Source of the DNA: Aplysia californica
Lineage: Eukaryota
NCBI RefSeq assembly: GCF_000002075.1
Contig: NW_004797494.1
Span: forward strand, 27,465 to 91,304
Direction: 5' to 3'
DNA length: 63,840 bases
Below, in pieces: positions 1,891-27,960 of this stretch. Every line of letters begins with the position of its first letter. Within the stretch, counting starts at the first letter, position 1. Below the pieces are notes generated by a model, which saw nothing but the letters and a program-made list of their open reading frames with translations, made no database searches and was not told the DNA's origin. The position numbers were made by a program, and so were the translations under genes.

Positions 1891-1917
1891 CTGAGAAGTG
1901 GTAGAAAGGGACATGTA

Positions 1918-2207
1918 CGTTTTAGTAAGAGTTTTACGACACTTGCAACACGATAGGTCATATAAGTGCCGAAGATTAGAGGTGTTACAAGAGAGTAACA
2001 AACAGGAAAAAGAAGGAGGAGAGATAGTTTTAGTTTTAGTAGAGGTTTTATGGCGCTCGCAATTGCATAAGGTCATATGAGCGCCAGAAGATTAGAGGTG
2101 TTACAAGAGAGTAACAAACATAAAAAAGAAGAAGGGGAGATAAGGACGATAGATGTTTGATAGGAAAGAAGAAGCAAACCACACCAGAGCACCCGCCAAC
2201 CAACCAC
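1918..2207 (-). mobile_element. Short retroelement family A (composite, two 3' tails)
   Basis: Head GTGGTTGGTTGGCGGGTGCTCTGGTGTGGTTTGC, hairpin tail then ACTAAA repeats; 11-bp TSD TACATGTCCCT at 1907-1917 and 2208-2218. Confidence 0.9.
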
Positions 2208-2844
2208 AGGGACATGTATATAGAGGATTTTTGGTACAAATAGAGGGTAAATATGTAAATTTCCTCAAACATAGAAGCATCACAAAGACTTACTACTAAT
2301 TTGATGTCAAATGTTTCAGCCTAAAAGAGCGCAAACTATCCACACTTAACATCCTAAAACAGTACAAACTATCCACACTTAACATCCTAAAACAGTACAA
2401 ACTATCCACACTTAACATCCTAAAACAGTACAAACTATCCACACTATTAATAGCCCAAAATAGCAAAAAGTAATGAACAATGTTTCTGTTCGTAGACAAG
2501 GAACATCTCACTAGAACTTTTGTTAGTTAGACAAGGAACATCTCACTAGAACTTTTGTTAGTTAGATTGTTAGACAAGGAACATCTCACTAGAACTTTTG
2601 TTAGTTAGATTGTTAGACAAGGAACATCTCACTAGAACTTTTGTTTGTTAGATTGTTAGACAAGGAACATCTCACTAGAACTTTTGTTTGTTAGATTGTT
2701 AGACAAGGAACATCTCACTAGAACTTTTGTTAGTTAGATTGTTANNNNNNNNNNNNNNNNNNNNNNNNNNNNNNNNNNNNNNNNNNNNNNNNNNNNNNNN
2801 NNNNNNNNNNNNNNNNNNNNNNNNNNNNNNNNNNNNNNNNNNNN

Positions 2845-3402
2845 CCCTCCACACCCACACACACACAGGTTACAGAGCCTCCAGGCTGATGTCACAGTGT
2901 AGCGGGAACACGGTCTGTCGGAAACGAATGATGGGTACATCAACGCTCACACACACACACACACACACACCCACGCACACACACACCCACGCACACACAC
3001 AAACAGCTTACAGGGCCTCCAGGCTGATGTCACAGTGTAGCGGGAACACGGTCTGTCGGAAACGAATGATGGGTACATCAACGCTCACACACACACACAC
3101 ACACACACCCACGCACACACACACCCACGCACACACACAAACAGCTTACAGGGCCTCCAGGCTGATGTCACAGTGTAGCGGGAACACGGTCTGTCGGAAA
3201 CGGATGATGGGTACATCAACACACACACACCCCCCACACACACAAACACACTCCCCCTCCCCCACAAACACACAGCTTACAGAGCCTCCAGGCTTATGTC
3301 ACAGTGTACCGGGAAAACGGTCTGTCGGAAACGGATGATGGGCACATCAACGCTCAAACACACACACACACACACCCACACACACACACACAAACAGCTT
3401 AC
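2845..3402 (-). repeat. Second copy of the exon-5-derived tandem array
   Basis: Four units of the same exon-end + donor + (TG)n motif. Confidence 0.95.
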
Positions 3403-3629
3403 AGAGCCTCCAGGCTAATGTCACAGTGTAGCGGGAACACGGTTTGTCGGAAACGGATGATGGGTACCCTGGCGTTGAGGATCTTGAACACGTTGGAGGT
3501 GCGGGGCATCAGCTCCACAAGGGAGGCGACCATGGCCAGGGTGCGCTGCGCCAGCTGTCGCTCTGTGCTGAATGTCTCTGTGATGAAGCGGAAGTTGTGG
3601 TTGGTCTTCCGGGATGAGACAGGCGCCGA
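3403..3629 (-). CDS. MTPAP: MTPAP exon 5, copy 1
   Basis: ERQLAQRTL...KILNARVPIIRF...CDIS (third catalytic Asp); ttctcag acceptor, GTAAGC donor; 227 nt, phase 2. Confidence 0.88.
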
Positions 3630-4262
3630 CTGAGAAGTGGTAGAAAGGGACATGTACGTTTTAGTAAGAGTTTTACGGCACTTGCAACACAATAAGGTCA
3701 TATAAGTGCCGAAGATTAGAGGTGTTACAAGAGAGTANNNNNNNNNNNNNNNNNNNNNNNNNNNNNNNNNNNNNNNNNNNNNNNNNNNNNNNNNNNNNNN
3801 NNNNNNNNNNNNNNNNNNNNNNNNNNNNNNNNNNNNNNNNNNNNNNNNNNNNNNNNNNNNNNNNNNNNNNNNNNNNNNNNNNNNNNNNNNNNNNNNNNNN
3901 NNNNNNNNNNNNNNNNNNNNNNNNNNNNNNNNNNNNNNNNNNNNNNNNNNNNNNNNNNNNNNNNNNNNNNNNNNNNNNNNNNNNNNNNNNNNNNNNNNNN
4001 NNNNNNNNNNNNNNNNNNNNNNNNNNNNNNNNNNNNNNNNNNNNNNNNNNNNNNNNNNNNNNNNNNNNNNNNNNNNNNNNNNNNNNNNNNNNNNNNNNNN
4101 NNNNNNNNNNNNNNNNNNNNNNNNNNNNNNNNNNNNNNNNNNNNNNNNNNNNNNNNNNNNNNNNNNNNNNNNNNNNNNNNNNNNNNNNNNNNNNNNNNNN
4201 NNNNNNNNNNNNNNNNNNNNNNNNNNNNNNNNNNNNNNNNNNNNNNNNNNNNNNNNNNNNNN

Positions 4263-4848
4263 TAGATTGTTAGACAAGGAACATCTCACTAGAACTTTTG
4301 TTTGTTAGATTGTTAGACAAGGAACATCTCACTAGAACTTTTGTTTGTTAGATTGTTAGACAAGGAACATCTCACTAGAACTTTTGTTTGTTAGACAAGG
4401 AACATCTCACTAGAACTTTTGTTTGTTAGACAAGGCTACATCCCGAGAGGAGATAAGATTAGAAAAATGAACATGGAAGCCACTCGGCTTTTGTGAAAAT
4501 ACCTGAAAATGTACAAAGTTGCATTTGCAAACAAAAAGACAGTTAATACATACAACTAATACCTGGTTAACTAGAAAACAAGTGCTCAGACTAACTATAA
4601 CTTTTGTTAGTTAGATTGTTAGACAAGGAACATCTCACTATAACTTTTGTTTTTAGTTTTAGAAGAGAGCTTTACGGCGCTCACAACTGCATAAGGTCAT
4701 ATGAGCACCATAACTTTTGTTAGTTAGACAAGGAAGAACTCACTAGAAATTTTGTTTGTTAGACAAGGAACATCTCACTAGAACTTTTGTTAGTTAGACA
4801 CGGAACGTCTCCCTATAACTTTTGTTTGTTAGACAAGGAAGAGCTCAC
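4263..4848 (-). repeat. ~34-43 bp minisatellite starting at the MTPAP exon 4 donor (also 2480-2744)
   Basis: Unit ttagacaaggaacatctcactagaacttttg; on the minus strand each unit reads GTGAGatgttccttgtctaa, like the true donor GTGAGctcttccttgtctaa. Confidence 0.9.
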
Positions 4849-25949: not shown

Positions 25950-26205
25950 ATGGTCGCTTTTAAGAACAAGCGGGCTAGCCCAGATTACGGGGATTTCCAG
26001 AAATCTTGACCTACACCAAAAGTGGACATTGCCCTACCTATAGGAGAAGTTGGGTTTCATTGGGGTGTATAAAAATGTTTGGTTATAGAGAAAACTCTCT
26101 TCTTCTAAAGAAACTGAACAAGGGGCAAAAACTTTTACCTTTGATTTTCTCAAAACTGCATATTTCGGAATAGCCCCTTTGTGCTTAAAAGCGACCTTAT
26201 ATACT
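25950..26205. repeat. Unclassified dispersed repeat (inverted copy near 39370-39620)
   Basis: Shared gaaatcttgacct...ttgccctacctataggagaagtt...ttatagagaaaactctc in reverse complement. Confidence 0.7.
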
Positions 26206-26239
26206 GTTACTGCTTGAGATCTGGCACTTGATGATGATG

Positions 26240-27040
26240 ATCTTCTTCTTCTTCTCGATCGTATCACACTTGAAGTCTGGTATCTGTCATAGATTGGACC
26301 GTCCTGCTTAGTTTATCTGTCTGCCCATATAGCTTCTCCTGTAGTGTCAGTGGGGTTGACCACGTTTCCTGTCTCAGGGCCCTGTGTGTGTGTGTCTGTG
26401 GGGTTGGCCACGTTTCCTGTCTCAGGGCCCTGTGTGTCTTGCAGTGCTGAAAGATGTGTGTGTGTGTGTGTGTGTGTGTTTCATGTCTCAGGGTCCTGTG
26501 TGTCTTGCAGTGCTGAAGGATGTGCTCAACAGTTTGGTCCGCCTCTCCACACTGGCATTTTGGTGATTGTACTAGTTAACAACATTTGAACATATATTGT
26601 CTCAGTCTTGTGTGTTGTGTCCTTAGTCTGAAGATAATCACTTGTTCTTGGCAGGACAGCTCATGGTAGCCATCTGGTGTCTGAGGTGCTTTAAATAGTG
26701 TATTTATGATAGTTTTTATTTCTGTGTAGTTAACGCTGTTGTCTGGTTGCTCTTTCTGTGCCCCTAGTTTGGCCATCCTGTCTGCCTGCTCATTTCCCAA
26801 GACACCACAGTGTGATGGAATCCACTGCAGCTTGATCCTCAGACATGGGATGTCCTCAATTTCTTTTCATAGCCTTGGTAGTTTGCCGGAAGTGATTGCC
26901 TGCCGTACTAACATGGCATCTGTTAGGAATACTACTTGGCTTTGGGGGTCTACCACATTCTTGATGATGTTTGCTGCATGTATTAGAGCCTCCGTCTCTG
27001 CCCTGTAGTTTGTACAATGTCTCCCTGTTGGGACTGCCTC
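26240..27040 (-). mobile_element. LINE fragment with RNase H and C-terminal Cys/His motif (I/Ingi/Nimb-group-like)
   Basis: NYRAETEAL...VFLTDA...LQWIPSHCGVLGNEQADRMAK...FRLRT...CQCGEADQTVEHILQHC...KLYG...* then (GAA)n; contains stop codons. Confidence 0.85.
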
Positions 27041-27124
27041 TGCTTGTCATGATGATGATGAGATGTTTCAAGATCTGTCAGTGCGACTAAGACTTTTCGC
27101 TTTTTCCCTAACTCCTCAGAAGCT

Positions 27125-27925
27125 CCCCGTGGCGGTGCCACTGACTGAAGTGTCTTTAGGTCATTCCCTACGGGGGGGGGGGACATTAACATGTTCGTAT
27201 GCACAGTAGAATTGTAAATGGGCTGATTTATCAATGTCTTGCTCATACTGTGTCGGAACAAAATAGGAGGAACTGCTGCTTTTTCTTTCTTAATCCTTAC
27301 TATCGTCTTTTGTCCTCTACTTCTTTTGCATGTTTGTCACTCTCTTGTGACCCGCTATTTCCGGGGTGCCTTGATAGTCGAAGCAGACTTTGTTTTGTTG
27401 AAGCTAGAGAGGTGAGCAGAGTAAGCCTGATTCCCTGTAAGGACTACTCTGTTGACATCCACCCCTTGGCGCTCATGTGACCTTATGCAGTTTTGGCGTC
27501 GGTGGCCAAGTGGTTAGGCTCTCGGACTCGCAACCGTAAGGTCGTGGGTTAGAATCTCGTCAGGGGCCCGACGTTGTGTCCTTGGGAAAGGCACTTTACA
27601 CAAATTTTCCTCACTTCACCCAGATGGAAATGGGTACCCGGCTATAGACAGTGAACGATCTTGTCAGTTTGATAGTGTTTGAGCGCTTGAAATCTACAGC
27701 TTGCATTGTATGCTTCCGTGGAAGCCGAGAATGTTTCTGAGTGTTCTCAGAGGGTCTGCTGGGGTAATAATAGTTGTAAAGCGCATAGAGCATGCTCTTG
27801 AGCATGGATATGTTGTTGTTGTTGTTAGCGATCCAGTAGCATCTGAGCGTTAACTCTTCTGGCATCGCACTATATAAATGCAATTATTATTATTGTAAGC
27901 GCTGTAAAAAGTCTACTACAACTAC
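27125..27925 (+). mobile_element. Family B element with a family D tRNA-SINE (27495-27894) nested in its 3' hairpin
   Basis: The hairpin is split: ...GACCTTATGCAGTT, insertion, then GTAAGCGCTGTAAAA; the insert has A box TGGCCAAGTGG and an (ATT)n tail. Confidence 0.85.
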
Positions 27926-27960
27926 ATTTCTAACTACATCTCTTTTGTCTAACTCCTCAG

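Follow-up and report, generated by a model that had tools for sequence, protein, structure and literature searches.

The analysed window, a 63,840-nt stretch of contig NW_004797494.1 of Aplysia californica, contains an MTPAP-like gene on the minus strand, a plus-strand gene that appears to be TUT1-like, a presumed PH-domain adaptor-like gene (minus strand) and, on the plus strand, the beginning of a presumed BAZ2/MBD-like gene. The MTPAP-like and TUT1-like genes encode related nucleotidyltransferases and are arranged head to head, ~2 kb apart (9060-11064). Checked one by one, the exons of the window have open frames and compatible phases, and a Pfam scan of single exons matched PF22600 to four of them, including the MTPAP exon and two TUT1 exons. 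The MTPAP-like coding exon at 1664-1890 (minus strand; PF22600, E=2e-8, and frame) has a duplicate at 3403-3629, exon and flanks being present twice (947-2744 and 2845-3737) between assembly gaps with 97% identity over 893 nt, either as a haplotype artefact or as a tandem duplication. Exons beginning at 18262, 20487, 22129 and 27961 were assigned by frame, phase and presumed TUT1 similarity; the last (27961-28132, plus strand) has an open frame and uses the downstream copy of a duplicated acceptor, and was without a match in the Pfam scan. The TUT1-like exon 18262-18718 includes a gap (18353-18659) with open frame on either side, and a ~20-residue unit, repeated on both sides, sits where an insertion divides the catalytic domain.

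The sense strands of the introns show a strong T/G skew. At the native acceptors the branch motifs are weak, with at most 4/7 matches, and the pyrimidine tracts are interrupted by G. Minisatellites built from exon-intron junctions (exon end plus donor, or acceptor side) form rows of decoy splice sites at 1051-1728, 2849-3467, 14391-14914, 19191-19702, 20700-21450, 25238-25530, 26344-26500, 31153-31280 and 37908-38228; at 19191 a 30-nt unit repeats CAG|GTAGG ~17 times.

Two retroposon families with a common 3′ end

Two short retroposon families without a small-RNA head, one of ~180 nt (family A) and one of ~400 nt (family B), are present in ~28 window copies, as found by BLAST and a 3′-end profile. 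Family A has a sharp GTGGGT start and comprises two subfamilies; family B has a different head, and the two have in common 57 nt at the 3′ end and, more weakly, an internal stretch of 45 nt. In both, a TACTAAAAC tail follows the common 3′ hairpin and target-site duplications (TSDs) are found. Whole-genome pattern counts in an assembly of 927,310,431 bases (4332 pieces) gave 10,472 occurrences of one exact 19-nt 3′ end, and a scaled estimate of ~43,000 for a broad 3′-end anchor. The hairpin and tail at 24410-24465 (plus strand) are an example of this end (fold z -3.7). In an alignment of the hairpin 91% of cells are paired, with 13 double changes, which mostly track the two subfamilies and thus represent few independent events. 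TSDs of 8-18 nt, many beginning with A, were found at 24 of 30 genome copies and also at window copies.

In sister families the same hairpin is followed by (TAC)n, (TCAA)n or another tail, and some of their copies have been amplified as passengers inside larger repeats (C252, C366). Fragments of the 3′ end often lie directly in the same-direction tail of an older copy (1919-2088 and 18106-18223; loci L016 and L005), which suggests priming by tail-to-tail microhomology. The 5′ part of family A at 24290-24360 forms a long hairpin (z -3.9) with four G runs at its start, and these features may set the sharp 5′ end.

Classification as a classical tRNA or 5S SINE was rejected, as the element has no head derived from a small RNA and carrying the A and B boxes of Pol III promoters: the consensus contains no B box, whereas a tRNA-type SINE used as a control shows both boxes, and Rfam and ARAGORN searches of the element found no match. 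No HDV-like or hammerhead ribozyme was seen by eye in the heads, a metagenome pattern scan for a 3′ end common with an autonomous LINE gave no match, and nor did a motif search of the literature for the element. I-group LINEs end in a hairpin followed by (TAA/TAC)n, and by this likeness the partner may belong to the I/Nimb clade. In the mechanism that we favour, a LINE reverse transcriptase would recognise the common 3′ hairpin and copy both families, insertion would proceed by target-primed reverse transcription with duplications of 10-15 nt, and TACTAAAAC would be a LINE-type terminal repeat rather than a designed splice signal.

Tails ahead of acceptors

The first-pass annotation had proposed that the tails end at branch-point distance from acceptors and carry TACTAA-like motifs. 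Five independent insertions do end 15-50 nt before acceptors, at 1890 (minus strand), 18262, 20487, 22129 and 27961, with no assembly gap between tail and AG at any of them. The two MTPAP copies it had counted, however, amount to one insertion, the second (3647-3737, minus strand) being cut by a gap and lying in the 97%-identical duplicate that flanks the gaps, where it is no independent event. A further possible acceptor, the TAG at 10948, which lies 33 nt beyond a 3′ hairpin with a (TAC)n tail (10857-10915, plus strand), has no support: its position is upstream of the ATG, and the tail lacks a motif match in range.

At the MTPAP exon, a family A copy with a nested 3′ part (1919-2207, minus strand) has a TACTAAA tail with a branch-like A at -32, and its TSD (1907-1918 / 2208-2219), whose downstream copy begins 28 nt before the exon, bears out the claim that this insertion occurred close to the AG. 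The insertion before exon 18262 (acceptor 18261) is a copy of the second family A subfamily with a doubled 3′ end (17990-18229, plus strand; TSD 17979-17990 / 18230-18241). A family B copy of ~400 nt (20093-20465, plus strand), with only a degenerate 9-nt TSD, has its tail end ~20 nt before exon 20487, and exon 22129 is preceded by a family A copy (21488-22095, plus strand), at which a TSD was looked for and not found, whose tail has expanded into an array of ~20-nt units (21650-22095). The fifth is a family B copy (27126-27948, plus strand) into which a tRNA-type SINE has inserted at ~27490-27895. Its TSD (27108-27122 / 27949-27963) contains the acceptor AG itself, which leaves an upstream decoy acceptor with its AG at 27119. 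The original branch region and pyrimidine tract therefore now lie 840 nt upstream as a decoy, and the acceptor in use depends on tail-derived sequence, which makes this the best single case for a possible rescue of a displaced branch point. Other sense copies of family A lie further from acceptors: those at 13861-14040 and 15241-15420 (both plus strand) are counter-examples, with the next acceptor ~150 and ~165 nt off, a TSD-flanked copy at 17553-17712 (plus strand) is ~550 nt away from one, and a sense tandem of family B followed by family A (23877-24478, plus strand) is several hundred nt from acceptors, the next one lying inside a gap.

The best matches to TACTAAC in the five tails are 6/7 at -32 (MTPAP 1890), 5/7 at -46 (18262), 5/7 at -28 (20487), 6/7 at -40 (22129) and 6/7 at -28 (27961). 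Four tails thus offer 5-6/7 at -28 to -40, whereas fifteen other window acceptors have at most 4/7 between -15 and -45. The likeness to a branch motif holds to this extent, but the core motif is CTAAA, which is without the last pyrimidine of YTNAY. The array that had been described as dozens of ACTAA motifs (counted over 21650-22097) does contain 35 ACTAA and 13 TACTAA, but no TACTAAC.

When the 19 sense intronic insertions are placed at random within their own introns, 0.74 are expected so close to an acceptor against the five seen (P(≥5)~5e-4), a post hoc value, as the window was picked from ~14,500 and several such windows are expected by chance. This ratio of 5/19 is what favours a targeting model, in which the element would seek out acceptors engaged by the spliceosome and insert at branch-point distance from them. 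The model was examined genome-wide by counting motifs, rather than annotated acceptors, past the element 3′ end in a near (18-48 nt) and a far (118-148 nt) interval. The main anchor was the exact 19-nt end with its 10,472 copies, and the motif tests overlap in part; 60 loci were fetched as sequence, the wider test being made by whole-genome pattern counts. The motif YYNCAG, which weighs most as it catches 15/20 window acceptors whilst stricter motifs catch 0/20, occurred 1297 times near and 1204 times far (near/far 1.077), and the non-AG control YYNCTG 1607 and 1498 times (1.073). With YYNCAG there is consequently no AG-specific near excess (odds ratio 1.00, p=0.96; 5 +/- 70 matches among 10,472 copies), the upper 95% bound being 1.9% of copies. 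After subtraction of background, ~1-3% of copies have an acceptor at 18-48 nt, and likewise at 118-148 nt, while ~97% lack any acceptor-like site in the near interval. The enrichment at 20-45 nt that the first-pass annotation had anticipated genome-wide is therefore absent with this motif, and the idea of an element that inserts near spliceosome-engaged sites, or of a system built on acceptor proximity, is not supported, the excess being below 2% of copies. Taken together, the motif tests allow a surplus of 0-2% of copies and exclude targeting as the main behaviour. It is refuted as the dominant behaviour, and we consider the targeting model very improbable.

In the 30 best genome copies judged by eye, ~25% appeared to lie near acceptors; this figure was rejected, as most were chance pyrimidine-plus-CAG matches on a T-rich sense strand. 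Pfam kinase matches, tried as exon anchors, gave long exons.

Two observations speak against the lack of a near-acceptor excess. Stricter motifs at 19-29 nt from the broad anchor number 166 against 124, with 183 against 190 for the non-AG control (p=0.04), a marginal 1.3-fold excess (p 0.02-0.04) in a bin chosen after part of the data had been seen, and in the fetched loci 5 of ~62 copies lie at most 64 nt before a coding-like exon. In addition, no depletion before acceptors was detected in the motif counts. These results bear on a second model, branch-point rescue, in which the element inserts without targeting but is kept or favoured wherever it lands in the branch or pyrimidine zone, its tail serving as the branch point in use, so that a small surplus builds up. 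In support of this model are the strict-motif excess, the closer resemblance of the tails to TACTAAC than that of native sites, the case at 27961 and the comparison of the element from its main anchor (116 near, 92 far; p=0.11 taken alone, with a bump at gaps 16-25) with the control SINE (42 near, 57 far; p=0.04 between them), although the longer tail of the control SINE overlaps the near window and confounds that comparison. Against it, the sensitive motif shows no excess, the second subfamily gives 73 against 68 with strict motifs, the peak bin was picked partly after the fact, and native branch points are weak here, so that rescue is perhaps unneeded. We hold the model as a tentative and somewhat unlikely one; it is compatible with, rather than exclusive of, the explanation preferred below.

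A replacement branch point is plausible in view of the absence of depletion near acceptors, the marginal strict-motif excess and the displaced native branch region at 27961. It is also plausible because weaker U2-pairing sites lose out to stronger ones and because some human branch points come from Alu (PMC4315302). As read from its letters, then, the element is plausibly splicing-compatible, with a tail able to replace a displaced branch point.

Orientation within host genes

The strong genome-wide signal is sense orientation within host genes, not acceptor proximity. By hand tally ~21 of 22 intronic window copies are sense, including all five family B copies (5/5), and neighbouring copies in the fetched loci are co-oriented 21:5. 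In the sense intron strands of the window TTTTG exceeds CAAAA by 75:39, and the genome count made 250-280 nt past the element is 1044:714 (skew 1.46), against 716:745 (skew 0.96) for the control SINE (p=4e-9). The implied net sense excess is ~0.6 of all copies, with a wide error (range 0.4 to >1).

The explanation that we prefer, with a probability of roughly 55%, is of an intron-dwelling, LINE-mobilised, non-autonomous retroposon whose sense copies are tolerated and antisense copies purged, and which does not aim at acceptors. Selection would act on the copies that remain, with antisense intronic ones being lost as cryptic exons because they are full of AG dinucleotides, contain a T-rich run that closes with AG and carry purine-rich sequence resembling enhancers. 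In the family A consensus AG occurs 2 times on the sense and 24 times on the antisense strand, against 21 and 23 times in the orientation-unbiased control SINE. Sense copies, which are rich in pyrimidines and in family A contain hardly any AG, would survive even in the branch zone, and a sense tail placed there would offer a U2-pairing site at least equal to the native ones. The cluster in TUT1 would then follow from a very high density of copies in short introns, together with chance.

Several observations weigh against selection as the sole cause. The bias is larger than removal of antisense intronic copies gives, if about half of the genome is intergenic; family B is sense in all five window copies though not AG-poor (25 sense, 42 antisense); and the antisense tail has only a weak acceptor score, as judged with a small matrix trained on the window. 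A third model proposes that transcribed genes are nicked on their template strand by the LINE machinery, so that copies arise in sense within genes and without a preference for acceptors. This transcription-coupled insertion remains a candidate because the bias is so large and extends to family B, which has little in common with family A beyond the 3′ end; moreover, A-rich microhomology on a T-rich sense strand would produce the opposite bias, and the control SINE is unbiased. The partner LINE is only putative, however, the strand asymmetry of family A offers a ready selective explanation, and nesting into existing tails inflates co-orientation. The model is judged rather unlikely. Quite improbable is a combined scenario of an intron-adapted family in which co-transcriptional sense insertion, an AG-free body and a tail that provides several hundred exons with their branch point would let the element escape the depleted zone before exons.

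Relation to known systems

An acceptor-targeted, spliceosome-linked element would be new if true, but the counts exclude it as the main behaviour. What stays is a SINE-like family that is abundant, is biased towards sense to an unusual degree and pays no visible penalty ahead of acceptors. Nature thus offers a test of two questions: whether insertion or selection gives rise to orientation bias, and whether the tail of a retroposon can take the place of a branch point.

The closest descriptions are those of the mollusc LP-SINEs and MESC SINEs (Matetovici 2016, PMC4758252), which like this element are short, TSD-flanked, without a small-RNA head and terminated by short repeats. In LP-SINEs the first ~70 bp are homologous to the 5′ UTR of Nimb-17_LMi / I-3_DR, and in these mollusc families an ACTAAA hexamer before the repeats has been read as a variant poly(A) signal (PMC4758252). 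That paper, from the text of which 'intron' and 'orientation' are absent, contains no orientation or splice analysis, unlike the present account. Bipartite non-autonomous LINEs (Kojima 2018, PMC5786205) similarly have no Pol III head, a sharp 5′ end and a LINE-like 3′ hairpin and tail, but all reported cases belong to RTE, Ingi, Vingi or R2, while the partner LINE here is putative.

With respect to splicing, the parallel is with Alu, whose sense bias near exons has been attributed to antisense cryptic acceptors (PMC3088655), an explanation by one-strand cryptic acceptors that is like the one preferred here. The sense bias of Alu is local, whereas that of this element is strong and genome-wide, and Alu copies are depleted in the ~100 bp next to exons, in contrast to the element, for which no depletion before acceptors was detected (PMC3088655, PMC4315302). 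Finally, repeat-derived branch points in human introns include CUAAU in inverted Alu copies, whilst the branch-like motif of this element lies on its sense strand (PMC4315302).
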